From: Cycas panzhihuaensis
Taxonomy: Eukaryota; Plantae; Cycadophyta
NCBI GenBank assembly: GCA_023213395.1
Contig: CM041465.1
Span: forward strand, 195,059,741-195,123,740
Direction of reading: 5' to 3'
Length of the DNA: 64,000 bases
Shown here: piece by piece, positions 1-59,946 of the stretch
Layout: every line of letters begins with the position of its first letter
Numbering within the stretch: position 1 is the first letter of the stretch
The notes under the pieces: generated by a model
What the model saw: only the letters and a program-made list of their open reading frames with translations
The model's database searches: none
Told to the model about the DNA's origin: nothing
Program-made: the position numbers and the translations under genes

Positions 1-402
1 AATCAATTAAAGCATGTTCTTATTTCTACCCTTATTCTCTTTCCACCATGATTTGATGATCTCTTTATTATTTATACATCTTCCATTGAAGTTTTGTTAG
101 GGGGCATACTCACTCAATAATATTAGTGGCAACTGAGCTCAATAATTTATGGGTAAAGAAATAATGTCTTATCCTTGTCTTTTCTACAAGGAAACTTAGT
201 CATTATCTTTTTAAGAGACACTACACATGTCATTGTCTAAGCAAACATGATTTGGTATTTACTCTCTAGGTTAGATTTAACGAGATAATTAGCAAAATAG
301 GATTCGCTTCTATACAAACTTATTTTAGTTTTTATTAATTATAAATCTAAGAAAGGCATAGTCATAACTAAGTGTTTAGTCAAGATACTCCTGCCTGATC
401 CT

Positions 403-831
403 TGTGAGAAGAGAGGCACATGTACAATGTTAACAGCATATACATATGCAAGAAATAATAGGAAATAACACTGCACATGTACACATTAATTGACAGGTGG
501 AAAACCCCTTCTGGGGAAGAAAAACCACCTCCTAAAATCTAATTTATTAATAAGGAATAAATACCATGCTACAAAACCACCATTAACCAAAACATCCTTT
601 AAACAGACATTTGGACAGACCTTCTAGATTCCTGGAACCATCTCCATGAATCTAGGAGATGAATAAATACTAAGGAGGTTCGTTGGAATGCAGTTCCGCA
701 TTTCAATGACCTTCTACAAATTAATAAAATAAACCTAAGTTTAAACATTATAATCACTTAAATTACATATTAAATATGTGACTAAATAATGACATAAAAG
801 AAACATTAATTTTACATTATATCATCTAACA
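403..831 (-). repeat. Copia A 3' LTR
   Basis: Direct repeat of 7408-7836; adjacent to the PPT. Confidence 0.97.
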
Positions 832-879
832 TCCCCCTTTAATGTAAACTTTTATACTAGAGAGAAAATAAGAGCTTCA

Positions 880-3800
880 TCACAGTGATCCCCCTTTGAT
901 TGAGACTTCTTTTATCTTTAATAGATATCTGAGGTTCAATAATTTAACTTCAGTTAAAGACTTTGTAAATATGTCAGCAATCTATAAATCTGTTGGATAA
1001 TAAGATGAATAAATAATATTATTAGTAACTAAATTACAAATAAAATGTTGATGTAATTCTATATGTTTAGTTCTAGAATGTGTAATAGGATTAGTAGCAA
1101 TAGTAATAACACCTTGATTATCAACTTTAATTTCAATTAAAGAGTTTAGAGACAGACCAATTTCATTTAGTAAAGATTTTAGCCAAAGTGCTTCTTTACC
1201 AGCTTAACTAATACTCAATATTTGGTTTTAGTCGTTGATAACGCTAGTGCCTGCATTTTTTTGCTAGACCAAGTAATAGGTGAGGAATCTATAAAAAATA
1301 CATAACTTAAAGTAGATTTACGATCAGTTATATCACCTGCCTAATCAGAATTAGTATATCCAGTTAACGTTAGTGGTTTATTATAAAAATTATAAGTTAA
1401 ACAATAAAATACAGTATGCTTTAGATATCGTAAGATACGTTTGGCTGCTTTCCAATGAGATTCATATGGTTGTTATATATAATGGGAACATAAAGCAACA
1501 GCATAATAAATGTCAGGGCAGGTGTGAGTTAGATAAATAAGACTACCAATCAGTTGTCTATATAGAGTTGGATCACATAACGGAGTTAGACAATCAATAA
1601 ATAATTTAACTCCTGATTGTAATGGATTTGAAATAGGTTTAGCATTTTCCATGTTAAACCGCTGAATTAAGTCTAGAATATACTTAGGTTGAGATATTGT
1701 TATATTTGAATGATTTTGGTAAACTTGTAAACCAAGGAATTAATATAAGAGACCTAAATCGGTCATTTTAAATTTGTTCATTAAAGTAGATTTTAGATGA
1801 TGAATATTATGAGTTGACGATCCAGTAATGATAATGTCATCAACATAGAGGATTAGAATAGTAAGATTTTTATTTTCACATTTAAAATAAAGATTTAGAT
1901 CACTAATACATCTAGTGTATCCAATGTGAATTAAATAATCATTAACTTTGGTATACCAAGCTCGAGGAGCTTGTTTTAAACCGTACATGGATTTTTTAAG
2001 TTTACAAACTAAATTAGAATTTTCAATAAATCCAGGTGGTTGTGACATATATATCTCTTCTTTGAGATCACCATTCAAGAAAGCACTCTTAACATCCATT
2101 TGGTGGATTTCCCAACTAAACTTGGCTGCAAGAGCAATAATTATCTTGATTGTGTTCATCTTTACAATAGGGGCAAAGGTTTCATTATAATCAATGCCAT
2201 CTATTTGAGAAAATCCTTTTGTAACAAGTCGAGCTTTATATTTTTTAATTGTGCCTATTGAGTTATATTTAGTCCTATAGACCCATTTACAATCAATGAC
2301 ATTTTTCCAAGGTGGGAGAGGAACAAGATCCCAGGTTAAATTTTTAATTAAGGTATCAAATTTAGTTTGCATAGCATCCTACCATACAAGATTGTTGCTA
2401 GCTTTTTTAAATATTTTGGGATCATTATTGTCCATTATTTTTGCTATTAAGGTAAAATTAGCATGTAGTTTTTATGCACGTGTACGTCTGGTATCGGTAG
2501 AATTACCTACATCAGATCCAGCATCAGTAAGCATTTTTGTTACCCAAACAGGTTGCTTGTGAGTAACTGTATCTAAAGATGCAGGTTGATTTGATGAACT
2601 AACCTAAAGGGAAGAATCTATTTCAGTGGATTCTGATAGAGTCTAATTTTGGACTTGAGTTGATAAAGATTCTATAACTTCTGAATCAGCTTGTTTATCA
2701 GAAGGTTCAACCAAATAAGTGTTGGTTAACAAATTTTCAACAGGAAGTTTTACATAAGTAGATGTTGAAGAAGATCCTTCTTCATCAAATATTACATCAT
2801 GCAAAATAGAAATGTGATGCATGACTGGATCTAAGAGTCTATAAGCTTTACTCTCTTCGTTGTATCTAACGAAGATGTATTTTTGACTTTTTCTGTCTAA
2901 TTTTTTACATTTTTTGTGAGGGATGTGTCCCCATGCAATACTGCCAAAGATTCGTAAATGATTAACAGATGGTTTTCTTCCAGACCATTTTTGTTCTGGA
3001 GTAATGTTCTGTAGATATTTACAAGGGAAACGATTTAATACATAATTAGAACAGTTAATTGCTTCTACCTATAATTTTAAATCTAGATTTTTTGCATGTG
3101 ACATACAACAAGTCATTTCAACAAGAATACGGTTTTTGTGTTCAGCAACACCATTTTGTTGAGGTATGTATGCAATAGAATATTAGAACTGAATTCCGTG
3201 TGATTTACAGAAAGAAGTAAATTTTCCACTTAAATATTTTTTAGCATTATCAGATCGAAATATTTTGATTTATGAATTTGATTGATTTTCGACTAACGTT
3301 TTATATTCAACGAAAATATCAAACACTTGATTACATGTTTTGAGTATATAAACCCAACATTTTCTTGAATAATCATCTATAAATGTAACGAAATAACGAG
3401 AATTAGTGTATGACATTACATGAAAGGGTCCACATATGTCAGAGTGGACAAGTTCAAGTGGAGCATTTACTCTATATTAAGTTTTGTGTGGAAATGGATC
3501 CATGTGTTGTTTGCCTGTCACATAGGCTTCACAAACATCATAAACAGTGTTTAAGGGTGGTAAACCATGAACCATTTCATGCTTCTTTAAATATTGCAAT
3601 TTGCCATAACTTGTATGGCCAAATCTTGCATGCCAAAGTTTGCTGACTGAGTCAGATTTAGTAATAAAGGCACTAAAAGATTTTGTTTTGTTATTTTGAA
3701 GACTGGTTAGACTATAGAGATATGTGTTATGATCAACAGGTCCTAAGGCAATATGTCTAAATTTATTTGATAGTTCCTTTATGATAAATTTATTTTTCTA

Positions 3801-5108
3801 GAATTCAATGATAAGGTCTTTCTGGCAGATTTGATAGACAGAGAGTAGGTTTGGTAATAAACCAGGTACATAAAAGACGTCCTTGATTGAACCATCTTTT
3901 AGAATAACGTCACCTGATCCTTTGACTTTAAGTTGATTACCACTTTCGAAAGAAATCTCTTCTTTAGAGTTCAAATTAGATTGATAAGTGGTTAAATTTT
4001 TCTGGTGTCCAGTCATGTGATGGGATGCACCAAAGTCAAGGATCCGCTGTGGTGGTTGATTTAAAGGAGTAACAAACGTAGAAGTTGTTGCTGCTAAAGA
4101 ACGATTATGAGATTGACAATTTTGGGGTCATGATTGAGAATGGGATTGAGGTTTATTTTGCAATCCCTTGGAAGCTTTCCATGCTTCCGAAGCTATTCTA
4201 CTTCTACAGACATCAATAGTCTGGCCTCTTTTATGACAATAGGCACAACTAGTGTTCTGAGAAGAAGTTGCATTGTTCCTATTATGAAAGAATTGATTAG
4301 GAGTATTCTGGTGTTTAGTTGGACCAGAATATTTTATATTATTTTGTGAATTAGATGGTGAACCTCTGTGAGGTTTTTGAAACTTTGGATTACTATGAAA
4401 ATTGTTTTGTTGTTTATTTTTAAATTATGGCTTAGTTTTAGAAAATAAAGCTTGTGAAGGATCTTTTAATGCACCTATTTGAATTAACATTGTCTGATGT
4501 TCAATCAGTAGATTTATCAACTAATTTAATATTATAGGTGGATTGTCAACTTATTGTCTGGCCATTTTATAGAGATTAAAGTGTTTAGGTAGTTTGTTTA
4601 CTCTAAGACGTACGAGTGTGTCGTCATCTTTAACATGCATAGTTATTTTTTCAACATCATCTTCTTTGGTTTTAGATTTGATGTAGTTATCTAGATCTTT
4701 ATTAATTGATTGAATTTTAGTTAAAAAATCCTCAACATTAAAAAAATCATCAAAAGTAAGGTTATACAATTATTGTTCTAGGACAGCCACTTGATGTGTA
4801 TTAACCTTGTCATATTTTTCTTGCAAAGTTTTCCAGACAATGGCTAAGTCATCTTTTTCAAAAACCTGCCAACTGATTTTTGGTGAGAGTGAGTTTAATA
4901 TGGTGCCTAAGGCGGCATCTGAGCTCATCAGATATACCATAAGACTCTCAGTAGCATCTGGTTTTGGTTTTTGAAATTCACCTATCACATATCACCATAT
5001 CTTTTGTTGTTTAAGCTGATGGAATATGTGATTCCTCCAGTCGGCATAGCTTGAGCCTGTTAATACTGGAATTGGAACGCAGGTGATTGTCCCTGGCATT
5101 AATGCCAT
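880..5108 (-). pseudogene. Copia A gag-pol (gag, protease, GAG-pre-integrase, integrase, RT, RNase H) with stops and frameshifts
   Basis: ORF 1740..2372 has RVT_2 motifs (KARLV.KGFSQ, QMDVKSAFLNG, LYVDDII). Also ILDFGASHHMTG protease, PQQNGVAE integrase, ADIFTKSL RNase H end, and gag start MALMPGT. Confidence 0.95.
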
Positions 5109-7407
5109 ATTGGGAGTGTTGAGGTTTAATTGTAGATTGAAGAGTTATGAAGGTGATTGAAAAAATAATCACTTAGTAAAAAGTACTAATCATGTTAACA
5201 AATATAATTCAAGAAGGTATTCTAATATGCATTAATTGTATTTAAAGAAAAAATCATATGTTTATAAATAAATTGAATAAGCAAATGATCTCTTAAAACA
5301 TTGCCTTAAGCAGCCCCTTTTGATAAACTGTTCTTTTTGAGAAATAATCCTCTTTGATAATTAATCCCCCTTTGATAAACAAATTAGTTGCCCTTATTCT
5401 AAACAAATGAAAAGTCCCCCCTTGATTAAAACAGTTCTTAAAAAGAAATTACATGTTCTTAAGCAAATAGTCCCCCTTTGATAGATAATCCCTATTTAAT
5501 AAACAATCCCCTTTTTGATAGAAAGAAACTATCCCTTTTCAAATGAAAAGAATAGATATTCACTTGTTTTTAGCCAAAAAACTAAGAAAAAAATGAATTT
5601 TCTTTAGTTAATTTAAACTTTGTTTAAAGGTATACATATGTATATATATGTATCCTTTGAATGAGTATTAAAAAAATTAATATATATATCTTATATATGA
5701 CATATAGTAAGGTATTATATTAGGCAAGAGGGGGGAATATGATTAAAAAATAGATACTACATTTAATCTTAATCAAAGGACCAAGAAAGGTGATAAATGT
5801 TTCATGATTAAATAAGTTTTGTTAATAGTATATCTAGATTATTTTTAAATGGGTGTTTGAAGAATAAGATACACCTTATATTTGATAAAGAAAAAGCAAA
5901 GTTAATAGACAAGGGGAAGATCAAATTTTTAATATTTAAAAGTTAATTAAGAGGGGATGGGAAATTGATTTTAATCTTAGAATATAGTGGAGGAGGCAAG
6001 GTTTTGATTACATCAAAATGTAATAAATAGATACTTATGTTAACATTAAGGTATTGAAGAAGGGTTATTAATAATAAAGGATAAATATTCTAAGGTTTGA
6101 TTTAAAAGGATTTTTAAGTGTGATTAAGGGGGGGGTTTAATTAAATTAAAATAAAATAAATGAGGCGGGGGGGGCGTGTTATTGATTTTACGTACTAAGG
6201 ATTAACTAAAAAAGGGTTTTAATTTTAAAAATGTAAGGGGGGGTAGAAATAATAAATGTATTACATTGTATAGAAAAGGGGAGGTAATTAATTAATATAT
6301 TAATGTGATAAAGGGGAGTATATGATTGTATTAAAATATAATAAGGTAAAGGTGGGGGATACTATTTGATTTAAATTAAAATTAAAAAAGGAAAAGGAAA
6401 AAACCTAAACCTAAATGGACCCAATAAAAAATTAGTTTATTTTTAATTGATTTTGGGATCCGAGGGGGGGTAGGTTAATCGAAACCCTACCTGATTTTTC
6501 GATGGCGGTGCTCCTTTCGTTGCAGGTCTGTGAGGCATCCATGAGGATCCGAAGCAATGGCATCAAGAAGAAGGCTTTGTCTATGTTCCTATGTATATTT
6601 TCTAGCATGCCTATCTCGCCAAACTATTAGGTTCTCTTCCTCTTCCGATATTCTTCATGTAGTGGCGTTGCTAGGGTTTTCTTCTCATCGCCAACGTGCA
6701 AGGGGTTTCTCACCATTGATGGCACTACTGCTGTGAGTTCCTTTTACCAGGGATGTCCTCGTGGTTTTTCTTCACCGGAGATGCCTCTATAATAGGCTCT
6801 TCTCATCACTCTCTATCTCCCACACTGCCTGATGGTTTCTCTGGTTGTGATCTTATGCACTACTGCGATGGATCCAGGCATTTATTATCTGTAATTCCGT
6901 ATCCGTTCATTTTTTGTTTGTGCATGCATGTTTGCTTACTGTATGGCTCATCTGTATCATTCTCTATATTAGCCCTCCTCCTCTCCTACACTGCTGTGGT
7001 AGATCTTCATCCTCCATGAATGGGCCACCCAGGGCACTGTCTTTATGCCAAGGCCAGCCCTAACTCTATGATACTCATCTCTTACAAGTGTGGATCTTTG
7101 CCCTCAACCTAGCCATCATCCAAGGGTTGGCTACCATCTTCAAGTCATCAGTTATGTGGTTGCACAAAGGATGCTTGTTCTCTAACATAGCAGACAAGGG
7201 ACTAATATCCCACTAAGGACTGCAACAAGGTTCCACTAAGGGTTTTAACATCTCTGTGCCCTTAAATATGCTTCTTTGGCCATGAAAAGTAAGGTTTGTT
7301 GTATCAGAGCATTGTACTTCAAAGATGAAGCATTGATATCGATTGATTTAATCCCTTACTTGTAGCTTTTGACGAGCATGCCATTGTAGTTATAGGCTCT
7401 TTTACCA

Positions 7408-7836
7408 TGTGAGAAGAGAGGCACATGTACAACATTAACAAGATCTATATATGCAAGAAATAACAGGAAATAACATTGCACAGGTACACATTAATTGACA
7501 GGTGGAAAACCCCTTCTGGAGAAGAAAAACCACCTCCTAAAATCTAATTTATTAATAAGGAATAAATACCATGCTACAAAACTACCATTAACCAAAACAA
7601 CCTTTAAACAGGCATTTGGACAGACCTCCTAGATTCCTGGAACCATCTCCATGAATCTAGGAGATGAATAAATACTAAGAAGGCTCATTGGAATGCAGTT
7701 CTGCATTTCAACGACCTTCTATAAATTAATAAAATAAACCTAAGTTTAAATATTATAATCACTTAAATTATATATTAAACATGTGACTAAATAATAACAT
7801 AAAAGAAACATAAAGTTTACATTATATCATCTAACA
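7408..7836 (-). repeat. Copia A 5' LTR
   Basis: Direct repeat of 403-831; adjacent to the PBS. Confidence 0.97.
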
Positions 7837-9205
7837 ATCCCAAAAATTAGCTCATAGATGACTCCTTAATTGAAAAATATAATTTTCATCTTAATATCTC
7901 TCAAGTTCATGAATGGTAAAAGGATACTCCTTGCTATTTATAAATCCAAGATTTATTTAAAGACTTCTTGTTGGGTGTAATACTCAATTCCATTAGCCCT
8001 ATGTAAACTCTCTCTATCTTTTGTATATTGTATTAGAGTTGTGGGCCACCTTGATATATGTGCCACCTCTAAGTAGTCCAATGGGGTTCTTTCTCTAGTG
8101 GTGAGGTTGTACTATAAGTATGTACTCTTACTTGTTCATAATTGAGTTTTGGCCAATTCTCCAACATGGTGTCTATTCTGTGCATACTTCATCTTTTGTT
8201 GCTCACCATTAGGGTTTGATGTGCTTGTCAAATTACTAATCCTAACATGGTATCAGAGCCCAAGGTTCAACCCTTGGAGGCCTTTCTTGCAAATCCTAGT
8301 ACATGTCATTTCTGTTTTTTTGAGCTTTCAAGTCTTGTAAATTTTTTGATGTGCTTGTCAAATTACTAATCCTAACATGGACGAGTAGGACCGAAATCGT
8401 CGAAACGAAGGCTGTGAGATCGATAACGCTGTCAAGGGATAGCCCGTGCAAAAGGTAGAAGATGGCAGCCGATGGTGCAAAGTTAGAGCCGCCGACCTCG
8501 TGGACATGGACGATTTGCTTGAGCACAGGGCCATCATGGTCAAAGCCCCTAGCCTCAGGACTGTCGTGTGACCCAGTATCATCATCCTTCTTTCCTGTCA
8601 AACGAACAAATGCATTTGAGGCACCGCCACAGCCTCGCCTTTGAAGTAGCCCTCGAAGAGCCAATGCATTTACACGTGATTGGAGGCGAAAGGTGGATGC
8701 CCTCTCAATTTTGTTTCAGGATTTAATTAAGTGGGGATCGATCTGGTGTCATTCCCACAGATTCGGTGAGACCTGCACAAATATGGCGATGCGTCCCTCG
8801 CCATCGACGCCCTCTGCCCAAACCTGCAACCACTCATCACAAGACACTTGCAACATGGTAGACCTGGCTCATCCATGGCTGCCCTCGCAACGACAGGTCT
8901 GCAACAAATTCTATCAATGGCGGCGACATTCTTGCATAAACCCTAATAGGGTTACGAAACGCATTTGGGCGTTTTTTATTTTGGCGGACGTGGATTTTTT
9001 TTTCAAAAAGGGGTTATATTTTTTTGTGTTAAAATTTTGAATTTAATTATATTGGATATTGATTTCAAGTCCACCTAGCCCCTCATGACTTCAGCCCCAG
9101 TTTTATGGAGCCCTCATATGACCAACAGCCAGCTTATGAAGGGGGCTAACTCTTATTTCATCATTTTTCAACATTACTAAAGGGTACTTGTCACGTTTGT
9201 TTATT

Positions 9206-9323
9206 GTATCTTGAGATTGGAAGGCCCGATTTCAGTTCCGTCTGTTGCGTTGGATCCGTAACAGAGAGAGCTTTCATTTGACAGGTCATTTGACATATTT
9301 TGGAGCTGTTTTCATGGAGATTT
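9206..9323 (+). promoter_or_regulatory. Conserved spaced, dyad-like leader motif, copy 1 (function unknown)
   Basis: GTATCT-N12-GCCCGAT-N17-CGTTGGAT, then a mirror arm AGCTTTCATTTG..TTTGGAG..AGATTT. Same spacing as the four other copies. Confidence 0.6.
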
Positions 9324-9539
9324 TTAAGTTCAAAGTCACAAGTTCATATTTGTCTTCATTTTTTCTCAGTTTCTTCAGGCACATATTCAAGGTTTTCTTG
9401 ATGTAATGTACCCCGAATGGGGGGGATGACATGTACTATGGACTTCCTTTTAGCTCTTGAAGAACCCATTGTGATCTTATTGTACTTCATTTATGAGAGA
9501 GAGTCACATGTGCTACACAAGTCACATATCATTTTCAGT

Positions 9540-9673
9540 CATGTAAAAATTTCAAATGCTGGTTATTTTTGCCCATGGTGGCAAGTTGTTAGCCCAATGA
9601 GGCATCATGTAAAAATTTCAAATGCTGGTTATTTTTGCCCATGGTGGCAAGTTGATTAGCCCAATGAGGCATC
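9540..9673 (+). repeat. 66-bp tandem duplication inside the non-autonomous element
   Basis: catgtaaaaatttcaaatgctggttatttttgcccatggtggcaagttg at 9540 and 9606; tagcccaatgaggcatc also occurs twice. Confidence 0.9.
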
Positions 9674-9787
9674 TTGTTAGCCCATGTGGTATGTTTGAGG
9701 CCATAGTGCCATTGTATTTCCGGACATTAGATGCCGAAGAAGTGCTAGTCCTATTGAGAAGATGTAGGACACACTTTCAGAAGCTAC

Positions 9788-10237
9788 TCTTGTCTGCCAT
9801 GTGCTTTATACATATATATTTTCCTGCTTGCACTCCCATACGAGCAAGGGGTGGGACCTTATACAGCTACTCTTGCCAGCTCCTGACTGCTCCACGTATA
9901 CAAAGGGAGTTCCTACCCAACTGGCTGGCTACGGTGATAACCCATGCATTAGGTAGATGGACTCCTCTTCATATGGACTTCACGAATTTTTATCTTGGCA
10001 AAGTGTTTATGATCCAAAGACATTTATGATCCAGCAGACTTTTGGAGACTCTTGCCATGTGCCATGTGCCATGTGCTTATTATATATATTTTCCTGCTTG
10101 CACTCCCATATGAGCAAGGGTGGGACCTTATATACTCTTGCCACTCCCGATTGCTCCACGATACAGAGGAGTTCCTACCCAATCAAGCTGGTGATAACCC
10201 ATGCATTCCAGAGATGGACTCTACTTCATATGGACTT
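9788..10237 (+). repeat. Diverged ~190-bp direct repeat (9788-9980 and 10049-10237)
   Basis: Shared blocks atatattttcctgcttgcactcccata, gggtgggaccttata, ggagttcctacccaa, ggtgataacccatgcatt, cttcatatggactt. Confidence 0.9.
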
Positions 10238-11819
10238 GACTTTTCTATTATGTGCGGTTGCTCGATCCAAAGAATTTTTGGAGACTTGAGCTTATCATTG
10301 AAGTGACGATATTTATGTAATTGACTATTACAGGGGGGAATGTTGGGTGTAATACTCAATTCCATTAGCCCTATGTAAACTCTCTCTATCTTTTGTATAT
10401 TGTATTAGAGTTGTGGGCCACCTTGATATATGTGCCACCTCTAAGTAGTCCAATGGGGTTCTTTCTCTAGTGGTGAGGTTGTACTATAAGTATGTACTCT
10501 TACTTGTTCATAATTGAGTTTTGGCCAATTCTCCAACATGGTGTCTATTCTGTGCATACTTCATCTTTTGTTGCTCACCATTAGGGTTTGATGTGCTTGT
10601 CAAATTACTAATCCTAACACTTCTCTCATAAATGTCAATGTAGGATTAGAACTATTGCTTATGATTACATCCTCATTAACGACATTCTCTATAGGTTCTC
10701 TTTTAATGGTAGTCTTTTAAGGTATCTTGATCCATCAGAACCCAAGATAACTTTACACCAATTTCATGATAGTATTTATGGATGCCACATTAGAGGTCAT
10801 GCTACTACTTAATGAATACTTAGTATGGGTTATTTTTGGCCTACATTATTTAAAGTTACCCACTCACACATTTTAAAATATCACAAATGTTAAGAACATG
10901 CTAATATCGTTCACTCATTTTAGTTTCTATGAGAGCTATAACATCATCTTAGCCATCTTCATGATAGGGTATAGATCTCACTGGCATGATTACTCCTACA
11001 TTTGTAGGGGGTCATAGATTCATTCTTATAGTTATAGAATACTTTATGAAGTGGGTTGAAGTTATTGTGCTTTTATATATTACTAGAAAAATTATTAATA
11101 CCTTCATATTTTACCAAATTATTTATTGATTTGGGGTTTTAGATGTGATTGTTAATGATAATGATTCTTCCTTTTGTAATAAAGATATTTATGGACTTTA
11201 TTAAAAGTTCCATATCACTCACTATCCTCAAGTAAACAATTAGTCCAAAGCTTTTAATAAGATTTTGGTCGAAATATTTCCCAAGATGGTCTCATCTTCT
11301 TAACATCACTGGCACACTTTGTTTTATCTAGCTTTTTAGGCTTAAAGAACATTTATTCTCATTGCTAGTAGAATGGCTCATTTTTCACTTGTTTATGATA
11401 CTAAAGTAGCCATTTTATTAGAAGTTACAATCCCTTCTCTACATATTTTTTTGAAAGAAATTACCAATAAATAATGAAATTGATAATCTAGACTCTTAGA
11501 ATTGGAACAAATGGATGAAACTAGAATGTAAGCTTATAAGACAAATCTTCCATTTAAATAGGAAAATCATTCTACTTATGATAGCCACTTACACCTTAGA
11601 AATTTTTCTATTGGAGATAAAGTTCTTAAATTAGAATATTTATACAATAAACTTCACAAATTTGAACCTAAGTTGGTTGGACCATTTTTTATTCTTGAAG
11701 ATTTAAAAAATGAAGCCTATTGACTTAGCACTATTAAGGGACTTGATTTGCAAAACCTTATTAATTCATATTTCTTATGTAAATATTACATATAATTATG
11801 CATAGTCTCTATAATAAGA

Positions 11820-20027: not shown

Positions 20028-21314
20028 TGCTGAAGGGATCTAATTTCATTGGACTTCCAATAATTCTCTATTATTCTCTTAGTTTCTTTTGATATTGTTG
20101 TCATTTATGCTGTTTTGGAGTAGGGCAAGCTCAATGAAGAAAATTATAACACTTAGAATTCAAAATAAAAATGAGGAGCATATTGCTAGCTAAGAATACA
20201 AGAGAAATAGTGAATGACATTACTTAAACTCCAATTGACCCTGATGAGATAAAAAGTATATAAACAAAAGATAAAATTATAGTTGCAACAATTACTCTAT
20301 TAGTTGCAAACCACATTCTTACACATATCTCAAAGATAACAACTTCAAATAAAGTTTGGGTTATCTTAAGAAAGAGATACTTAGGTAACATCTTTGAAAA
20401 TGAAGAAAATAAAGAAAAACTACCCCCCCTCCCCCTAATTATGCTTTCTAATAAATTTGCTTCATTAGATAATTAATACATTGATTCATAAGCATCCAAG
20501 CATATAACATCTTAGAAAAACTAGTTCAAAAACATGGAAGATCATTATGGAGGCCATGTTGTTGAACTTGGAGAGAGAACTGCATACCTTGTTGGGTAGA
20601 GGAATTACTCCCATGATAATGACAAATGAAAAAATCAAGAAAGTGGGAGATATACATTTTGTTCCTAGTCTAAAGAACAATCAACTTTATCTCCCAATTA
20701 ACCAAGAAACAACTTAAAGTTGGGTTTGAAGATGACAAATGTATGGTTAGGGACAAAAGGAAAAACCTTAAAATTATCATTAAAGAAAAATAAGAAAATG
20801 ACCTTTATAGATTCATGGTAACTCCTACTCTACAAGCCTATACTACAAATAATAAAAATCCTATGAACGGAATCTGACATTTAAGGTATGGGAATTTATA
20901 TCATTAAAGTCTGATTCAATTCAAAAAAATGCAATATAATAAATGGTTTACCAAACAAAGAAAAAAGAAGAAGATATGTGAAGGATGAATGCTAGGGAAA
21001 CGACATAGGAATCAATTCCCAAAAACATCTTCAAGAGTCATGAATAAACTAAAAATTATTCATGGTGATATATATGGAGCCATAAAAACTACATCTCTTG
21101 GAAGGACAAAATACTTCATCAGCTTCATTGTTAATCTAACTAAAAGAACTAGGGTGTTCTCCCTTAATAACAAATATGAAACCTTCAATATCTTAAAAAA
21201 CTCTAGGGATTATATAGAAAATAAGAGTGGGAAGAAAGTTAAAACTCCAAGAATTAACAATAGAGGTGAGTTCACATCAAACACTTCTACAAATACCTGC
21301 ATAGTTAGAAATGT

Positions 21315-21815
21315 GTGAGTGAGAACTAAGATGGGGATAAGAGCATATACAAATATGGCAATTCCAAAAATTCTAAGGTATGAGGATACGAAAAAATTAG
21401 GGTTTTTAAAAAGTATATAGAAAATATGTGCATATAAAAATAAGTGTGTGACATACATCAAATCTAGAAAAAAAAATAACAAACAAACTTAGGACTATTT
21501 CTTATACATACTAATGTCTTTTTTTTTTTTTTTTTTTCCCTTTTCTTTAATCATTAAAGATTACATTTTGACTTCCTTACCTTTTTATGGGATTTTATCT
21601 TATTGAAATATTCTAGGATATGGTAAAATATTCTAGATACATTTGATGACAAATCCTAGATATGAATAAGATGCAATCCTTGTTATGGCCCAAATACAAG
21701 ATACGACCAAGATACATATCCATGGCATATCCATCAATTATCCAAGTATCTATGGTATATCTCATGTAAGTATGGCACTCTCTAGAGGAGTATCTGGTTA
21801 CATAAACAAATATTA
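21315..21815. mobile_element. ~500-bp non-coding insertion in the Copia B integrase; probable non-autonomous DNA element (Helitron/MITE-like)
   Basis: The integrase frame stops after NRGEFTS and resumes at IKR..TP..NGV.ERKNKTIIEMAR. The insert has gatac/gtatc subterminal motifs and a poly-T. Ends and TSD not resolved. Confidence 0.45.
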
Positions 21816-22287
21816 CAAACACCCATCATATTAAGAGATGATTGATAATGGTATGTACTCCTTAATCAAATGGAGTGGATGAAAGGAAAAACAAAACCAT
21901 CATAGAAATGGCAAGAAATACATTCAAAGAAAAAGGGATACTAAACAATTTATGAGTTGAAGCAATCAAGATTGAAATCTACTTTATCAACAAAGGTCCA
22001 ATAAAAGTTGTTAAAGGAAAAACTTTATAAGAGGCTTAGACCAATAGAAACCTAGATGTCAATCATTTGAGGATATTTAAAAGCATTGCCTTTGTGCATA
22101 TTCTTGAAAAAAAGGACCAAACTAGATGAAGAAACTTCAAAATACATCTTTGTAGGCTACAATGAAAAATCCAAAGCTTATAGATGTATCAACCTAGGAC
22201 AAACAAAGTCATCATAAGCAACAATATTATTTTTTATGAAAAATTCAACTTGATTGAAATTTTATTATCAAATAGAGAAGAAGACAT

Positions 22288-25200
22288 TGTTGAAAGTCCA
22301 AAACCTCAACGCCATTATTTCTTAATAAAATACTATGCAAATAGATAAACAAGATAATACTAATAGAAACAAATAATAATAAAGTTAAATATATAAGCTT
22401 AAAAGGATTAAAACTGAAACTAGAAACTGAATAGGCTAATTGTCCCTAAGCATTAAGTGCCAAATAATGGAATTAAACCAAAATCAAAACTTACATAATG
22501 AGTTGTTAAGACCTCTTTTAATATAGAGACAAAGTTAGGCCCCTCTTAAGAAAATTGACTTCATATTAAAATTAAAAAACCAACATCCTAAAAAATACCA
22601 ACTTCTAAAAGAAATTGGCTTTCCTATTTATTTAATAAATTTTAAAATCACTACAATCCATCCCTCCTTTAAAAGAATACTTTGCCCACTAAGTGTTTGA
22701 AATTATGTCACTTGGAAGTCTAGAGCATGTACCTCCTCATACATATATATTCAATCCTCTACCTATTAAGGTAAAAATATTGTAGGGTTTTCATTATCCT
22801 TTATTTTGTCTTCTCGAAGAAACCTAAATGTATCTTCTTCCTATTTGGGATAATGCCTTGTCTGGGGCTATATTTATAGGAGATTTTGTTCTTAGTTGAT
22901 CTTGAGACCTATGTGTTCTAAGGTCATACCTTTTGTTTGTATATTGTATCGATTTGCAATTGTTTTTAAGGGGAAATTAAGAAAATGTAGAGGAAAGATA
23001 TAGATTGTGGATGTTATATTTGGGGAAATAGGTATCAGTAATTTTTAGAAAGGATTAGGGATGTAAGGGTGGATTTACATGTGGGGAATATAGATCATAA
23101 AGGGTAGCTTGTATGAAGGGAGGTGTATGTGGATGCATAACAAGGAGAGAGAAGTGAAAAAAATATGGGGAATAGAGGATATAGATGAGTTATATTAGGA
23201 AGAAAACTAAGAAGAACCATATACAGGGATTTGGTTAGGGACTGTGATATATGAATGCTAGATTGGATAAAAGGTAGATAAAAATAATTTATCGTTAATG
23301 AAGATGATGTTATATAAAATGAAAAATAAATGAATTTGGATTTGTGAATGAGTTTTTTTAAGGGGGTTAAAGGGAACTAGTAGGAAATAAGGGCTAGGCA
23401 TTCTTTATAAGAAAAGGGTTTTAGAAACGGTTCATAAAAATGGTTTCCAAAGTATTACAAGGGCTTAATGAGAAAACAAGTAGGGAGGTAAGGAAGTTGG
23501 GGGTAAAGTGAGTTAGGTTGTAGAGGGAAAGAAGTCAACGTCTTATAGATGCATTGTATAATAATAGGATTAGGGTTTGAAACTTTTTAAAAGGAATAAA
23601 GGATATAGGAATGGTAATAAAGAGATTTCCTAGGGAATGGGGCATAAAGAGGTACGTTGAGAAGGATAAGAATTTTGCCCATGAAGGGTTGGCAATTTTG
23701 GGCTTTAGATTCTAATTTGGTTATAAGATCTTATTGTATAAAGGTTAGGGAATTTTCCAAGGTGATAGAGTTGGGACAATTGAGATGAATAAGGGAACTT
23801 TCAGAAGGAATGGACAAGGATGATGCAAGGTTGAAATTTAAAGTAACTACCTTTTCAAAGTCATCTTATGTCATATTCTTCTTCAAGTTGCTTATTAGCA
23901 GGCACTTCTCTAGTTGATTCATGTGAATTACTTATTGCTTCATCATATTGCTCTTTGAATGGCTCCTCATTGGATTATTTTTCAACCTAATCAGTTGGTT
24001 CTTTGATTGTCATTGTGCAATATTTTATTCTCTCTTAAAGAGCTTTTAGTCTGGCTAGAATTTTTGAAGCGTTTCTTGATGACATTTTTCATTGTCTTTT
24101 TTTCGGTATTATTCTTCAAATTTATGAAATCATCATTCATACAGTCTCTTTAGCGTTCTTTCCACAACTTTATAATCATTTCTTCAAACCTTAATGAAAT
24201 AGCATTTTGAAAAATATTCCCAAATGAGGCAGTAATCTAAAAGTTTCTTAATGGCCTACTCCTAAGCTTGTCCACCTAAATATTCCTAAATATATAAGCA
24301 AAATAGTCTTCTCTTTGTGTGGGACCAAATATTAAAGCCCTTTTCCATCTTGTTGAGCCATTCTATGGGACGCACTCCTTCCTTTTCAATAAAAATAAGA
24401 ATATCATTCTCCATAATTTCATTGTAGGGGCACATTATTAAGTATTAACTTTTAATAAAAATTACAATATCAAATTAGAACCAAATTACATCATTCAATA
24501 GCTCATTTTGAAGGCCTCTAAACCAAGATTCCAATGGTTTAAATAGAATTAAATTATGACATCTGTAGTAGAAGTTATGGTTGAAAATGCATAAAAGTGT
24601 CACGTTTTGAAAACTGAACTAAAAAAATAAAGGGATTCTATTAAGCCCATTAGGGACTTGGACCCTAGTTATCTAACGTCAACATGTGGCCAACCACTAG
24701 CCAAAGGTAGTTGGGTGTCAAAACTCAAATAATATACAATTTAATTGATTTTTTTTTTCTCTTTAGAAAAACATAATATGCCCCAAAATATATTTATGCC
24801 ACATGCCTTCGACATCTATCTTTTATGTTTTTGCATTTTTTTTTGTGTTTTCCACCCTTGCCTAAGATCTAGGGTATACAACTCAATTAATAAGATCCCA
24901 ATCTTGTGCTAACAAGCTCTAGGTTTATGTTGGTGCTCAATAAAAGAAGGTTGGGAGGGACAGGGTGGGGGGGGGGGGTGTGGACTGAACAAGCACCTTG
25001 ATAATCTATATATATATCCCCATTCTGGTATCTTTTCTCCTATGAAAGAACCACTAATTTTTGCCTCTAATCATAAGTCAAATTTGTTGGAAGTTGCAAT
25101 ATTCTTCTTTTTTACGCCTTGCTAATGATCACCCAGATAATGGTCTAGACTAAGCGCCCTTATGGACTAGGCTTTAGGCTCCCCTATCAATGATGGAAAA

Positions 25201-25970
25201 CTTAACTACATAGTTTCCTCCACATTACTTATGCATCTTTGTTATGATGCTCATGTTGTTACAATCTTCTATTTTCACGCACATTAACAAATTATGGCTC
25301 ATAGTTAGTGCCCCCTCCTATTCTTGTTATCACGCTCCTCATGGATTATGACTAAGATTAAATCACACTATTCAAGTAGTTGACCATCTTCTCAAATTAG
25401 CATCCAACAGATTAGATTTAGTGGTACAATAGTAATTCTTCCAATGTATAAACAAAATAAATATTCTACACCTGAATGGAGGCACATATATCTTGCTAGC
25501 ACTGAATACACATAAATAGCAAACCTTGATAGTAAATGGCAAGCTAGTGAATGACCAATATGAAAACCTAACATGAATTTGGCTACATATGGCTCTGATA
25601 CTAGTTATCAAAGGTCCAAAACCTTAATGTCACTATTTCCTAATAAAATATTATGTATATAAAGAAATAAGATAATAATAATAGTAACAAATAACAATAA
25701 AGCTAAACATATAAACTTAAAAGTATGAAAATTGAAATTGGAAGTTAAATGGGTCAACTATCCCTAATCATTAAGTGCTAAATAATGGAATTAAACCAAA
25801 TTAAAACTTGCATATTAAGTTTTTAAGGCCTCTTAATATAGGGACAAAATTAGGCTTCTCTTAAGAAACTAACTTCATATTAAAATTAAAATGCGAACAT
25901 CCAAAAAATATACCAACTTCTGATAAATATTGACATTCCTATTTATTTAATAAAATTTGGGATCACTATA
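22288..25970 (-). mobile_element. Gypsy-type gag-only non-autonomous LTR element (TR-GAG-like)
   Basis: LTRs at 22288-22655 and 25606-25970. PBS rc ggctctgatacta at 25591-25603. PPT rc at 22656-22670. Decayed retrotransposon gag at ~24430-23900 (PIEWLNKMEKGF..YLGGQA..WEYF). No pol. TSD degraded (gacat/agtat). Confidence 0.85.
24461..24578 (-). promoter_or_regulatory. Conserved spaced leader motif, copy 2
   Basis: Minus strand ATAACT-N12-GTCATAA-N17-CATTGGAA (24578 to 24529). Confidence 0.55.
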
Positions 25971-27943
25971 AGTATTAAAAACATTTTACCTTCAATTGTT
26001 AAAAAAGAGATTCAAACACAAGGAAGACCACAAAAAGAAAAATATTCACATATACACAATGACAAAACAAGTAACAATTTACCACTGGAAAATATACCAA
26101 AATGATATTTATCCACTCTTTACGACTGAGGAATGAATAAGGAAATATTGGAAAGTGGAAAACAAATGAGATCAAGAAGTTACCCAGGAAGTATTGCAAC
26201 ACTAAGTTATGCCTTGAACACAAACAAACCCATAACCTCTAAAGAAACTAAAGAAAACAAAGCTTGGGATAAGGCAATGGAAGAAGAAATCCTTATTATT
26301 CAAAGGAACAACACCTGGGAATTGACTGAGCTTCCAAATGGTAAGCAACTTGTTGGATGCAAGTGGTTATTTAAAACAAAATACAGATTAAATGGAATGA
26401 TAAAAAGACACAAAGCTAACCTGGTAGTCAAAGAGTTCAGTCAAAAATAAGGAATTGATTGTTAAGAAACATTTGCCTATAGCAAAACTAATCATCATAC
26501 AAACCATTATAGCATTAGTTGCCCAAATTAATTGGAGAATTTATTAGATGAATGTAAAAAATATATTCCTAAATGGAGATCTAGAGGAATAAATCCACAT
26601 GGAACAACCTCATGGGTTCATCAAAAGTGGAGAAGAGAATTTAGTCTACTAATTGAAAAAGGCTCTATAAGACTCAAAATAAGCGCCCACAATATGATAG
26701 GAGAAAATTGATCAATATTTGAAAGGGGAAAACTTCTATATAAGTGAATATGATATGGGTCCCTACATCAAAGCTAAGAATACATGGCTCATCATAGTTA
26801 TAGTAGTTTATGTTGATGATTTGCTTATCGTTGGCAATGATGAAGACAATAGTAAATAGGTAAAAGGGAATCTAATGAAGACCTTTGAAATGATAGATAT
26901 GGGACCACTACATTATTATCTAGGGGTTGAAATAACATAAGGAAAAGAAAGAATATTTCTAGCTTAAATAAAGAATGCCAAAGATCTACTACTTGAGTAC
27001 AACATAACCAACTACAATCTAGCCACCACCCTCATGGAAACTGGGTACAAACTTATAATAAAAGATCAAGGTCCAACAACCAATGATATATTATACAGGA
27101 AATTGATAGGAAAGATTGATTTACCTCACTTCCACTCATCTAAGTATAATATATGTTATGGGAATAGTCTATAGATTCATGAATGTACCACATAAGGCTC
27201 ATTGGAAAGCTACAAAAAGAATCCTAATATACATTAAAAAACCTTAGGTTTTGGACTTGAATACACCAAAAACCAAAATTTCAAGCTTACTAATTATAGT
27301 TAATCAAGTTGGGATATATAATGTAATGTCAAAAAGTCTACCTATAGTTACTAATTTAATCTTAGAACAATAATTGTCTTATGAAGTAATAAGAAACAAC
27401 CATCAATTACTCTCTCGTTAATAGAAGTAAAAACCAAGTAGTTATAGTAGCCATATGTGAATCAATATAGTTGAGAAGAATTCTATAAGATCTAAAGAAA
27501 CCTTAACATCTTCTCGTAGTGATCAACTACAATGATTAGCATATGATCAAGATAGAAAAGAATCCATTCTTCCATGTACACATTAAACATATTGAGGTTT
27601 ATCATCACTTTATTGATAAAAATGTTCATAACAAAGAAATAGAGTTGCTTTACTACCCAAGTAAATCACATAATGTAAACATCTTTACCAAAACCCTTAA
27701 TAAAGATAAGTTCAATTTCTTTAGAGATCAAATCAAAGTAAAAGACATAGAATAACCATTATTAGGGGTGGGGTGGTGTTAAAATAATGTTCATTCTATT
27801 TCTACATTTCTTTGTATTTTTGTACCATAGATTTTATTTCTTATACTTTAGTCCACTTTTCAATTCACTCATTTGAATTGTAGTCATCGTTCTTAGTAAG
27901 TTTTACATGATGAATAAATGTCACTCATACAAGTAGACTCATC

Positions 27944-28086
<143 letters not shown>

Positions 28087-28623
28087 CATATACCCTCTAT
28101 TGAAGGTTTCAATAGAGAGTATAGCAGAGCAGTAAATCAAAGTAACTCAATCTATATTGTGTAACATATAAAATATCATTTGTATTAACCCATATTTATT
28201 AAGAGTACATGAAAACATCCTTGAATAGGTGGTGTTAATGAACACCAAGGTATAGTACCCCATGATATTTATATTTTGAGGGAGGAGGGAAACCTCCTCA
28301 ACCTCTAATTCAAATTAATATTAAATAATGTACAACATTAAAGACAATCTTACCTAACTTACCATGAAGGCTTGTGCACTGCATACTCCAATGTGGGGTC
28401 ATGTGATGAGTATTAACCTAACATTCTCCCCCTTAATGGTCATCATGTATATCTTTATCTTCTCTTTGAACTTGTAATACTTGAACTTGAGGAAGACTTT
28501 AAATACTTGTCCTTTAGCTTTGTCATCATTCATGAAGTGGTCATCAACTCACCTTGTTATTCTTTCAGTAATATATGTCTCTTTAGTGTTATGTGGATCA
28601 AATAATCTCCAAGTAAGTGTGAC

Positions 28624-29135
28624 TTACTTCAAATGGGAATGAGTGACTGCATCTTTGATTTTATCTTCTAAAATATTTATTTTATGAGTAGATATCATGT
28701 CATAAGGTTTCTCCCCCTTAAATGAAATATCACCTTCATGTGCATCAATATGATCGTTCATTTGACTTGAACCTTCTTCATTAGTCTTTTCATCATAATA
28801 AAATTGCTTTGACATATGTTTCATATTTATAACATCATCATAGTTAAATACATTCATATTGAGGGTTTCTCCCACATAAATAGATGTTAAGGTATCCCAT
28901 ATGAATTTGGATGTGGTCATTTCACAAACATTAGAAAAAATATTATCATCCATGGTGTAAAATAATATGGCTAAGGTCACATTGTCCTTCTTTAGATCTT
29001 CTTTAATATTTTGTTCATATCCATCTTTGACATATTTCCAAAGATCATATGTAATAAAGTATGTTTACATTATTTTACTCCATCATTGAAAATCATGTCC
29101 GTCAAATATAAGGAATCTTATTTTTATTTAAATTC
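28624..29135 (-). pseudogene. Copia gag N-terminal region (DUF4219/UBN2-like)
   Basis: FDGHDFQ.WSKIM.TYFITYDLWKYVKDGY..KKDNVTLAILFYTMDDNIFSNV..SKFIWDTL. Confidence 0.85.
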
Positions 29136-30749
29136 ATTGTCATTGTAAAAGAAACTTTAATACATAATCGAACAAGTATGATTTTCAAATAAGAAGACAA
29201 ATCCTTAAATGAGCACTTATGATTTTTAATAGACTTATCATAAATGAAGTAAATGATAAAGATATTCCTTTAAAAAGAATGCAAGCCAATGTCTTTTTAA
29301 AAAATAATTAATTAATAATGAAAATAGATTATCAATGATGCAGTCTTGCTCAGGGTTTCAAAAGGTTCTTTTATACAAAAAAGAAATAACTTGAATGAAG
29401 AACAATATCCTCTAAGCAAGATTTAATAAATGATATAATAAACTTTTGAAGAAAATATTCAAGCAATAACTTCTTTGATAAACTAAAAAAGAAATGCAAT
29501 GCCTTTGAAATTGAAATTCTCTTTTGAAAGTAAAGTGCACAAACAACTATATGCAACCTTTATAAGTAAAATAATGAATCAATAAAGCTTTCAACAAGTG
29601 AACTTTTGATGCATATAATGGTCAAGAAATGGCTTGTAATTATCCTTGTGTTATGCACTTTCAAAAAATATGCATTTAGAACAAGTAAGGGAGCTAATGA
29701 ACCAATGAACTTAGGATGTATGATTGCAAATACTCTTTGAAATAAGATGATCAAATGAGAAGAAGTGATTGAAAGAAGATAACTTTCTTATTGAAAATAA
29801 ACAAGTAATAAACTTTTCTTCAAATAAATAATATTGATGAAATGCACCTTCCTTTTTCTATTAGATATAATGAAGAAATAACAAGGATGTATATGTCTCT
29901 TTTGAATACTTTTAGCAAATATAAATTTAAATTATGTTTAATACAAAGAAGTATTTGAATAAATCGTAAAGGTTTCAAATAGAGATAAGTGGCTCAAGTA
30001 AGTCAATTAAAAATGAAATGAATTCCTTTTCAAATATATGCAAGATAATTTACTATCCTTTTTAACCACAAGCAAAGATGTATAAGGCAAAAATTTTGAA
30101 ATATATATTTTTCCTTAAAAGAATGAAAAATATTAAGCAAAGCTTCCACTAAGAGAGTTCAAAAATAAATAAATATACCCATTTTTATATGTAAGCCTAC
30201 TTTACTTGTTGATTGCTTTAGGTATATGAAATCAATCTTCTACTACAAATCAACTTAGAAAAACTATATGAGAGCCAAATAAAATCTTTAAAAATATATA
30301 ATGAATAATTAATAAAGTAAATATAACCTAGTTGAAATAAAAACTCCTTAAAGAGTTAAGGAAATAAGCCTGTTAGTGTAAAACCAAATGCTTAAGTTTA
30401 CCAGCTCCAAAGTCTTGCTAAACAATAGTAGATTTAAATGAAACTATATCAGATTGATGAATATAAAAATATCTTTTCAATGGATTTGACTACTTGGAAA
30501 ACGGACTCATGTAACTCAAGATATTAATGATTAATCAAAATGACACTTTTTTAGGGCTTAACCAGAGCCAAGAGGCTCAAAAGGTCATGAAATACCAATA
30601 AAAACTTTATGAAATAATGTAAAGAAGATCATATATAAATTAGAAGCTTCTTAATATGCCTTAAGTCCATTAAACTTAAGAAATAATGTTTAAAAATATG
30701 AAATAATGAAGAATTATGAGCACTTGAGTACCTTAACTTTATCAGCTTT

Positions 30750-30866
30750 GAACATCTACAAAAAAGCTTCAAAATTTACAAATAAATATATCAGTACAAG
30801 AAGAAATGAGTTAGATTTCCAACGAAATTGATGGATTTGAAATCTGATGTCAAATAGAAGAGTTAT
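30750..30866 (-). promoter_or_regulatory. Conserved spaced leader motif, copy 3
   Basis: Minus strand ATAACT-N12-ATCAGAT-N17-CGTTGGAA (30866 to 30817). Confidence 0.6.
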
Positions 30867-40740: not shown

Positions 40741-40868
40741 TCAAAAATATGCATCCATAAAATTATAGATTATATGTCCTTTTATTTATTTATATACAAA
40801 TAAAATTTTATTAAAATAGCAAAACTTTAAAAGAAACAACTAATGCAAAATTAAAAGTTGGATGATTA

Positions 40869-56280: not shown

Positions 56281-56405
56281 TTGATAGTTTTAGTTTGATC
56301 CTCGAAAACTTCCTTGACCTTAGAAGTTGCTTTATTCTTGATAGCTTTAGTTTGGTCCTCAAAATCTTCTTTGACCTTGGAAGATTCTTTGTGCTTGATA
56401 GATTT
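56281..56405 (-). repeat. 57-bp in-frame tandem repeat in Copia G gag
   Basis: ttgatag at 56281, 56338 and 56395; encodes Q/G/N/F-rich 19-aa units. Confidence 0.8.
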
Positions 56406-58012: not shown

Positions 58013-58119
58013 ATAACTCCTACAAAACATGCTCAAATTGGCTCTAAACTATATCCCTTTAAGTTAGCTTTCCAACGGTTCAAACGACACCTGATTTTGA
58101 CTCTTTATTGAAAAGTTAT
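58013..58119 (-). promoter_or_regulatory. Conserved spaced, dyad-like leader motif, copy 4
   Basis: Minus strand ATAACT-N12-GTCAAAA-N17-CGTTGGAAAGCT. Bounded by inverted ATAACT (58013) and AGTTAT (58114). Confidence 0.6.
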
Positions 58120-59404: not shown

Positions 59405-59721
59405 CCAATAATAATGAGAGTGAAAAGGCCAAGGCTTGAAGTAAAATATTCAATGAAGACACCCAGAGATAGTCCATTCATGTGCTGACAACTTGGCAGC
59501 TTAATGAGCACATGTATGGAGAATTTCAAGGACTTAACAAACAAGACATGAGTGATGAACTTGGAAAGGAGAAGGTGTATCAATGGCATCATAGTTATGA
59601 TATTCCTCCTCTAAATAGTAAGAGCCTTGAAATATGTGCAAAACATGTTGTTGCCTACTTTAAAGAATAAATTGAGCCTCAACTTCTTTGTGGGAAAAAT
59701 GTGTTGATTATTACTCATAGC
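59405..59721 (+). pseudogene. gpmA: Intronless fragment of a 2,3-bisphosphoglycerate-dependent phosphoglycerate mutase (histidine phosphatase family)
   Basis: NESEKAKA*SKIFNEDTQR*SIHVLTTWQLNEHMYGEFQGLNKQDMSDELGKEKVYQWHHSYDIPPLNSKSLEICAKHVVAYFKE*IEPQLLCGKNVLIITHS. Matches the dPGM pattern WQLNERMYGELQGLNK..WRRSYDIPPP.GESLE..GKNV.I.AHGN; three in-frame stops. Confidence 0.93.
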
Positions 59722-59946
59722 ATTTACAATTGACAGTGAAATTGTTGGGTGAAAATTTTAGCTTTTACAAAGTTTAATTTGAATTAAATAAAATTGAATT
59801 GTGGTTTGAAATCTTCTCTACCCCCAAGTGAGATGGTAATTGGTTACATGGACCCTAGCACATGACCAGTGGCTAAATGAATAAAGTGTTAATGATGTTT
59901 TTAATATGATTTTAATTTTTTATGAGGCACTATCACTTTTTTGAAT

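Follow-up and report, generated by a model that had tools for sequence, protein, structure and literature searches.

A fixed-spacing three-block motif is the best-kept core of a leader module in related Copia retrotransposons of Cycas panzhihuaensis

The untranslated-leader enhancer of Drosophila copia and the Su(Hw) array in the gypsy leader are leader enhancers or insulators of LTR retrotransposons, and the Drosophila LINEs jockey, I and Doc have 5'UTR internal promoters in which an Inr and downstream elements stand at fixed spacing. Non-autonomous LTR elements retain packaging (PSI) and dimerisation signals, examples being the BARE-2/BARE-1 pair, the LARDs and the Ty1 5' cis region. To our knowledge, hardly any cis-acting signals have been mapped in the leaders of plant retrotransposons. 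Descriptions of plant elements that bear on the locus reported here concern TR-GAG and other non-autonomous LTR retrotransposons (PMC4350172) and the Angio-domain, a conserved core domain of plant SINEs (Seibt et al. 2020, as cited in PMC13570524). Leader cis-signals decide which non-autonomous elements ride on which partners and so bear on the recent retroelement bursts of gymnosperm giga-genomes, including the burst described, with low GC, in Welwitschia (PMC8275611).

The window analysed here, meaning the whole stretch of 64,000 nucleotides (68.6% A+T), had been described in a first-pass annotation as containing a three-block motif shared by five retrotransposons. No description of this motif was found in the literature, and a conserved leader module was not described for TR-GAG or other non-autonomous LTR elements in the papers searched. 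Our analysis indicated that the three-block motif is real and is the best-kept core of a non-coding leader module in related long-leader Copia retrotransposons.

The three-block core in the window

A scan of the window with the pattern ATAACT-N12-GTCMGAT-N17-CGTTGGAA detected three sites at up to two mismatches and four at up to three mismatches (24578, 30866 and 58119 on the minus strand and 59947 on the plus strand). Together with the copy at 9206 on the plus strand, these were the five copies of the first-pass annotation, and identical N12 and N17 gaps were found in all of them. The blocks proved less exact than had been claimed, since every copy departs from the pattern at 1 to 4 of 21 positions. 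The copy at 9206 was validated despite its four mismatches by a blastn alignment of 9036-9400 with 59778-60141 (60% identity over 371 bp, E=2e-16). Two degenerate copies with the same gaps were detected in tandem with the copy at 30866. One (c3a) was supported by a blastn match between carrier elements E3 and E4 (66% over 77 bp), in register with c4, and the other (c3b) by an nhmmer match at 30524-30469 (E=0.015). Searches of the 64 kb with two nhmmer profiles gave the known copies and one degenerate copy, and none outside retroelement leaders. The copies in the window were as follows.

Core copy c1: 9206 to 9255, plus strand; 4 mismatches, reading GTATCT-N12-GCCCGAT-N17-CGTTGGAT
Core copy c2: 24529 to 24578, minus strand; 3 mismatches; the most divergent copy by module similarity
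Degenerate tandem copy c3b: 30489 to 30538, minus strand; ATATCT-N12-GTCCGTT-N17-CATTGAAA; 328 bp downstream of c3
Core copy c3: 30817 to 30866, minus strand; 1 mismatch
Degenerate tandem copy c3a: 31007 to 31056, minus strand; ATATCT-N12-ATCAATT-N17-CTTTTTTA; 190 bp upstream of c3
Core copy c4: 58070 to 58119, minus strand; 2 mismatches
Core copy c5: 59947 to 59996, plus strand; 2 mismatches

The orientation and position attributed to the motif were both borne out. All five full copies run in the sense of their element, as do all seven when the degenerate copies are counted. In the four carriers with a primer-binding site (PBS), the core lies approximately 958, 1025, 1309 and 1016 bp from it, matching the earlier figures of approximately 960, 1025, 1310 and 1015 bp, and it lies between PBS and gag, upstream of gag wherever the carrier has one. 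The window provided five full and two degenerate copies, and a handful came from outside it; the consensus common to window and outside copies extends the blocks to CCATAACTT, GAGTCAGATTT and CGTTGGAAAGCT at fixed gaps, a core of approximately 50 nt. In a gapless alignment of 15 copies, the block columns were invariant and the spacers were free.

The departures from the pattern, the weak similarity of c2 to the other copies and the chance-level scores of several metagenome matches outside the pattern positions (see below) are what would be seen if the copies resembled one another by chance or through the composition of AT-rich leader DNA, an effect inflated by how the motif was picked. This explanation is countered by the gaps, identical in every copy, by the c1-c5 alignment, which belongs to a network of significant pairs, and by a shuffle control in which 100 dinucleotide-preserving shuffles gave no match at up to two or up to three mismatches. 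Chance resemblance was largely refuted, and we consider it very improbable; the motif is non-random and strand-consistent.

One feature of the earlier description was lost on analysis. A mirror arm, giving imperfect dyad symmetry, had been reported, but the inverted-arm score was no better than that of shuffles in any of the five copies. As dyad symmetry was not above chance, a dimeric factor or a recombinase acting on a palindrome was not indicated.

Substitutions within block 3 were also recorded. The CG of CGTTGG is replaced by TG or CA in c5, c2 and c3b and in two copies from outside the window (L005 and L007). The TG of c5 and the CA of c2 look like methylation decay, being the expected products of deamination of a methylated C. 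The PBS-like site of element E4 has transitions of the same kind.

Carrier elements and the leader module

The five full copies lie in five LTR elements or remnants, as follows.

E1 (carries c1): 7969 to 10619, plus strand; non-autonomous LTR element of 2651 bp; LTRs of 279 bp, 100% identical; TSD CTTCT; initiator-Met PBS TGGTATCAGAGC at 8248; polypurine tract (PPT) before 10341; no gag and no pol
E2 (carries c2): 22293 to 25971, minus strand; LTR element; LTRs 82% identical; Met-type PBS-like site TAGTATCAGAGC at 25603; no pol
E3 (carries c3, c3a and c3b): 28101 to 32497, minus strand; gag-only (TR-GAG-like) Copia; LTRs 89% identical; PBS TTTGGTATCAAAATG; PPT
E4 (carries c4): 55470 to 59760, outer limits approximate, minus strand; Copia; PBS-like site TTGCTATTAAAGC at 59135
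E5 (carries c5): head to head with E4, whose 5' end it adjoins; neither a PBS nor gag or pol recognisable

The annotation had correctly noted that four of the five carriers are without pol. It had also treated them as five unrelated elements, Copia and Gypsy, which could not be upheld in that form. E3 has a Copia gag (PF14223) at 28627-29064, approximately 3 kb after its PBS; E4 has a gag (PF14223) at 57067-56687, a zinc knuckle and a pre-integrase remnant at 55682-55488; both are assigned to Ty1/Copia by these domains, and their gag sequences are 40% identical. A PPT and LTR start are common to E1 and E3 (blastn), and E5 is tied to the other carriers through module similarity alone (c1-c5, 371 bp). 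The gag of E3 and E4, the PPT-LTR terminus of E1 and E3 and the module of c1 and c5 link E1, E3, E4 and E5 into one long-leader Copia group. E2 has no Gypsy domain match. Its ATG at 24414, 164 nt after the start of the motif, opens a decayed gag-like frame, which at 24414-24289 resembles by eye the F.G..P..WL..mE..F start of Retrotrans_gag (Gypsy-type gag); the superfamily of E2 was not indicated by Pfam searches on pieces (no match), by the Atlas (no lead), by homologues (none) or by tblastx against the L007 Gypsy (blank). No evidence for sharing between Copia and Gypsy was found within the window, and exchange across superfamilies is not indicated there, four carriers belonging to one Copia group. 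Sharing of the module in the window is read as descent, most simply as vertical inheritance within that group.

Three further Copia elements of the window, at 400-7841, at approximately 40868-46008 and from 46983, have short leaders without the module. The Copia reverse transcriptase of the window is closest, among named proteins, to those of Pinus, Ginkgo, Cryptomeria and Taxus, and a search for relatives via gag gave 10 weak matches among representatives.

Several further features of the carriers and their surroundings were observed. With its identical 279-bp LTRs and TSD CTTCT, E1 was probably inserted very recently. Its interior is a patchwork of a G+C-rich captured piece, the module and tandem repeats: 8345-8380 is a duplicate of the last 33 bp of the LTR together with the opening 3 bp of the PBS, the G+C-rich segment at approximately 8380-8960 has a stop-free frame of 139 aa on the minus strand, without a Pfam match, and tandem duplications occupy 9539-9677 and 9795-10240. 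E2 is nested in the pol of a plus-strand Copia, where it splits the integrase (20989-22193) from the RT (26130-27117). A long (TA)n microsatellite at 27950-28100 directly adjoins the 3' LTR of E3. A stop-free piece of 59 aa at 54766-54942 on the minus strand, without a Pfam match, recalls the C-terminal portion of a Gypsy-type integrase (W..LP..LWEY..). Its position, downstream of the integrase remnant of E4, suggests that E4 has probably been truncated by another element or is nested with one.

Spacers and flanks had been said to differ among the copies. This was true of the outer leader, which is unalignable, but homology extends over 300-400 bp around the motif. An alignment of approximately 400 bp, a profile search and pairwise local alignments against shuffles placed the motif at the core of a 300- to 400-bp island of approximately 60% identity. 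Module pairs mostly had z values of 6-26, while z was approximately 0 both for the leader between PBS and module and for the 600 bp after the module. The c2 module was an outlier, significant against c4 alone (z=5.7; E=0.006). The layout begins with an AT-rich lead-in. Part A, hairpin-prone and G+C-richer, precedes the core by approximately 100 nt, and the core is followed by a block comprising TTTGACATATTTTGGAGCT and then, in c1 and c5, ATGGAGA. The extents of the modules were as follows.

Module of c1: 9036 to 9400, plus strand; part A at 9066-9150, core, TTTGACATATTTTGGAGCT, ATGGAGA; nhmmer extent 9020-9418
Module of c2: 24364 to 24771, minus strand; from profile search
Module of c3: 30651 to 31225, minus strand; part A at 31220-31120
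Module of c4: 57913 to 58302, minus strand; part A hairpin at 58255-58170
Module of c5: 59761 to 60157, plus strand; from profile search

An origin of the copies as fragments of a single MITE that inserted independently, with TSDs of its own, was not supported, since the edges of the module showed neither TIRs nor TSDs nor a tail. The presence of a conservation island within leaders that otherwise cannot be aligned suggests constraint.

Similar cores outside the window

Metagenome contigs were scanned with a single pattern, ATAACT-N13-TCAGATTT-N16-GTTGGAA, and 10 loci were returned (L001 to L010). In order to score these loci on positions other than the 21 fixed by the pattern, we used a PWM built from the five window copies and a plainer consensus count, with the following results.

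L008: no random site of 20000 as high by PWM; consensus count p=0.008
L010a: no random site of 20000 as high by PWM; consensus count p=4e-4
L002/L006: PWM p=7e-4; consensus count p=0.004
L007/L009: PWM p=0.005; consensus count p=0.03
L004: PWM p=0.04; consensus count p=0.09
L001, L003 and L005: PWM p=0.01 to 0.57; consensus count p=0.15 (L003 left out of the count)

These scores suggested that L008, L010 and the L002/L007 family are probably homologues of the window core, and that L004 and the L001/L003/L005 family are at or near chance level. Similarity across the loci was limited to 50-85 nt, and our confidence in the homology between species, as judged from sequence, is moderate. A scan of viral contigs gave a single match, on a phage contig, which was attributed to chance.

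L008 is an intact L1-type LINE, with an ORF1 containing a zinc knuckle and an ORF2 containing endonuclease, RVT_1 and zf-RVT domains, and its nearest named relatives are fern proteins; the core is in the sense orientation in the 5'UTR, 183 nt before the ORF1 ATG. L007 contains a minus-strand Gypsy (RVT_1, integrase SH3 domain), and its core is on the plus strand between the end of the integrase and the 3' LTR, hence antisense to the Gypsy. In L007 the core belongs to a discrete unit of approximately 340 bp, which is present at 77% identity in L007 (6162-6496) and L006 (6933-7276), in otherwise unrelated contexts. Between L002 and L007, the blocks are intact save for one CG-to-TG change and the spacers are changed. 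L010 has two tandem units 184 bp apart, the second of which was not selected by the pattern. An ATG follows the core by 77-185 nt in L008, E2 and L010. In the literature, the exact 12-mer was found solely in a 380-bp Triticeae satellite consensus, which has CTCCGAT-N17-CGTTGGAAAGCT at the same spacing (PMC7349979), and in its primer (PMC12737168).

Other structures were observed at these loci. L001 (approximately 380-660), L003 and L005 belong to a MITE family of approximately 230 bp with terminal inverted repeats beginning TACCGTAATATCCCTAATAAGGGCGCC, in which the pattern match is mid-element; the rest of this MITE is dissimilar to the window module, so its pattern match is probably due to chance. 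At 592-5239, L006 has long inverted repeats with arms of approximately 1 kb, 84-92% complementary and 2.6-3.9 kb apart, together with a 55-bp tandem array at 1708-2105, and could be a foldback or long-TIR DNA transposon. B-box-like strings were noted in L007 (GGTTCAAATCC at 5900-5990, approximately 330 bp upstream of the core), in L010 (GGTTCAATTCC, approximately 45 nt upstream) and at c2 (GGGTCCAAGTCC), with no tRNA detected by ARAGORN or Rfam.

Overall, a similar core is probably present in retroelements of other plants. The earlier claim that the motif crosses element classes was not upheld within the window, but from outside it there was moderate support in metagenome contigs, namely the copy in the LINE 5'UTR and the one inside a Gypsy.

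Possible roles of the core and comparison with known systems

The module was compared with coding sequences, structured RNAs and known repeat families. A coding exon (gag N-terminus or upstream ORF) was rejected, as a six-frame comparison showed no preferred frame and stops in most copies; all six frames were similarly weak, and conservation was in contiguous blocks of 7-12 nt, third positions included. RNAalifold gave zero consensus pairs on the gapless alignment of 15 copies, a test of low power with 5-15 copies. A hairpin proposed by hand between blocks 1 and 2 was discarded, as the share of paired cells was 57%, and 58% in shuffles, and the part A hairpin upstream was no more stable than shuffles (z of -0.5 to -2). 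Rfam gave no match at the gathering score in the window, and those at E up to 10 (c1, c4, c5 and L007) were at chance level; no IRES family was matched. No tRNA-like gene was detected by ARAGORN, nor any Rfam tRNA match up to E=10. Resemblances by eye to 5S-rRNA-derived (Cassandra-like) sequences, tRNA-like genes, snoRNAs, ribozymes and U12 introns had no support from Rfam or ARAGORN. For a tRNA-derived SINE, the tRNA-like head with A and B boxes was absent by ARAGORN and Rfam, with loose B-box-like strings seen by eye; the module edges showed neither a SINE-type A- or T-rich tail nor a TSD, and stand-alone copies are absent from the window, yet the 340-bp unit occurs in both L006 and L007. 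For a MITE, TIRs were absent, the inverted-arm scores being at shuffle level as noted above, and no TSDs flanked the module. The position, in the leader between PBS and gag and in the sense orientation, is that of a packaging or dimerisation signal, but no conserved secondary structure or covarying helix was detected with the 5-15 copies available, at low power. Fixed-spacing blocks conserved without structure are the pattern of a DNA site for a host factor.

The conservation island, the intact blocks with changing spacers (also between L002 and L007) and the CG losses in block 3 argue for purifying selection on a primary-sequence signal, and the module is likely to be a functional one. Our tentative preference is for a selected cis-signal upstream of gag or ORF1, read as a DNA site for a host factor and acting as a leader enhancer or internal promoter. 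The core would be kept by selection within a 300- to 400-bp non-coding module of the long 5' leader, placed before gag at approximately 1 kb from the PBS, and this module would belong to one Ty1/Copia group and its gag-only and non-coding derivatives. The 50-nt core itself is probably older than this Copia lineage, given its recurrence in other plant retroelements. It would be read as primary sequence at fixed spacing rather than as a conserved RNA helix. On the DNA it would be bound by a host factor or a complex of factors, and its effect may be that of a leader enhancer or internal promoter placed shortly before the start of gag or ORF1. The lack of a covarying helix, the rigid gaps, the tandem multiplication and the one antisense occurrence favour such a DNA site; the antisense core in the L007 Gypsy, indicating orientation independence, and the tandem copies in E3 and L010 fit a site of the enhancer type. 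The annotation had left open a site read by a protein on DNA, possibly as a dimer, or a packaging or dimerisation signal in the leader RNA. The blocks, rigid spacing and lack of a covarying helix fit the protein site better than a structured RNA, although not its dimeric or palindromic form. Two observations run against the DNA-site reading. The core is most degenerate in E1, which is the youngest carrier and presumably was active recently, so that exact blocks are not needed for transposition itself; and the distance from module to gag in E3 and E4, 0.9-1.6 kb, is large for a promoter. We also know of no plant binding protein with a 50-bp rigid tripartite site.

A signal acting in the RNA, as a single-stranded protein-binding platform for packaging or dimerisation by Gag or ORF1p, or for translation or export (IRES-like or translational enhancer), is possible, if doubtful. 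The sense orientation, the place before gag or ORF1 and the retention in non-autonomous elements put it close behind the DNA site. The sense orientation extends from the seven window copies to the LINE 5'UTR, the site is where packaging and dimerisation signals lie, the module is kept in E1, a very young non-coding element dependent on packaging in trans, and the ATG of E2 opens its gag-like frame soon after the motif. The cores are best preserved where the element has retained gag (c3 and c4) and worst (c1) where it has no ORF, which fits a link with gag expression; the decay of the E1 core likewise fits a role in gag expression better than one in packaging (n = 5). Against an RNA signal are the lack of a conserved helix, covariation or unusual stability and of any Rfam match, the L007 copy antisense to its Gypsy host, and the expectation that a packaging signal evolves in step with its own Gag, rather than turning up in a LINE as well. 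An unlikely third explanation is that the module is the relic of a once independent repeat of approximately 190-400 bp (SINE-, MITE- or minisatellite-like), which entered an ancestral Copia leader and was then inherited, the core being conserved for the small element's own needs, or apparently conserved, with no role for the carriers. Such a relic would account for the fairly discrete homology limits inside patchwork internal regions (E1), for the 340-bp unit of L006 and L007 and its antisense position in the 3' region of the L007 Gypsy, for the tandem units of 184-190 bp in E3 and L010, for the Triticeae satellite (PMC7349979) and for the B-box-like strings upstream in c2, L007 and L010. However, a tRNA-like head was not detected by ARAGORN or Rfam, the module edges have no TIRs, TSDs or A/T tail, the 64 kb contain no copy outside a retroelement leader, and a neutral relic should show the same decay as the leader around it, whereas between L002 and L007 the blocks stayed intact while the spacers changed.

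A broader proposal, to which we give a low probability, is that the tripartite core of approximately 50 nt is an ancient, portable 5'UTR element of several retroelement classes across land plants, all of which would enlist a single conserved host factor to transcribe or translate gag or ORF1. It would span the gymnosperm-type Copia leader, the fern-like L1 LINE 5'UTR, the Gypsy-borne repeat and the grass satellite, and, if true, would make the core a common "entry ticket" of plant retroelements. A rigidly spaced signal survives here in a scrambled leader and may recur in the LINE 5'UTR of a distant plant; it could be used as a host-factor probe, as a marker for coding-free LTR elements and as a candidate internal promoter or translation signal. 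If it is merely a lineage-specific leader remnant, it would still be a useful family marker, and otherwise ordinary.

In relation to described systems, the likeness to TR-GAG and other non-autonomous elements concerns the carriers and not the motif: E1, E2 and E3 are short elements that have a PBS and a PPT and lack pol, and in E3 gag alone is kept. The Angio-domain, compared by its description in the citing paper, is similarly a short domain conserved across distant taxa in divergent repeats, with units of a few hundred bp; unlike SINEs, the module has no tRNA-type head, tail or TSD, and its window copies are exclusively in LTR-element leaders. As with PSI signals, the module is in the leader and is kept by derivatives dependent on a partner (the non-coding E1 and the gag-only E3), but PSI signals are lineage-specific and structure-based, whereas the core has no conserved helix or covariation and is probably not confined to one lineage. 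With the internal promoters of LINEs it has in common rigidly spaced blocks, free spacers, the sense orientation and a 5'UTR position near ORF1 (183 nt in L008); its blocks do not match Inr, MTE or DPE, and the Copia site is 1 kb inside the transcript. With the leader sites of Drosophila copia and gypsy it has in common a short sequence-specific site between PBS and gag, sometimes in tandem, with no RNA structure needed, read as DNA by a host factor, which for this core is putative. It differs from them in being usually single, approximately 50 bp long, tripartite and rigidly gapped, in belonging to plant Copia elements, and in having a similar core in a LINE. By these comparisons the module, while a member of no tested family, would work most like leader enhancers or LINE internal promoters.
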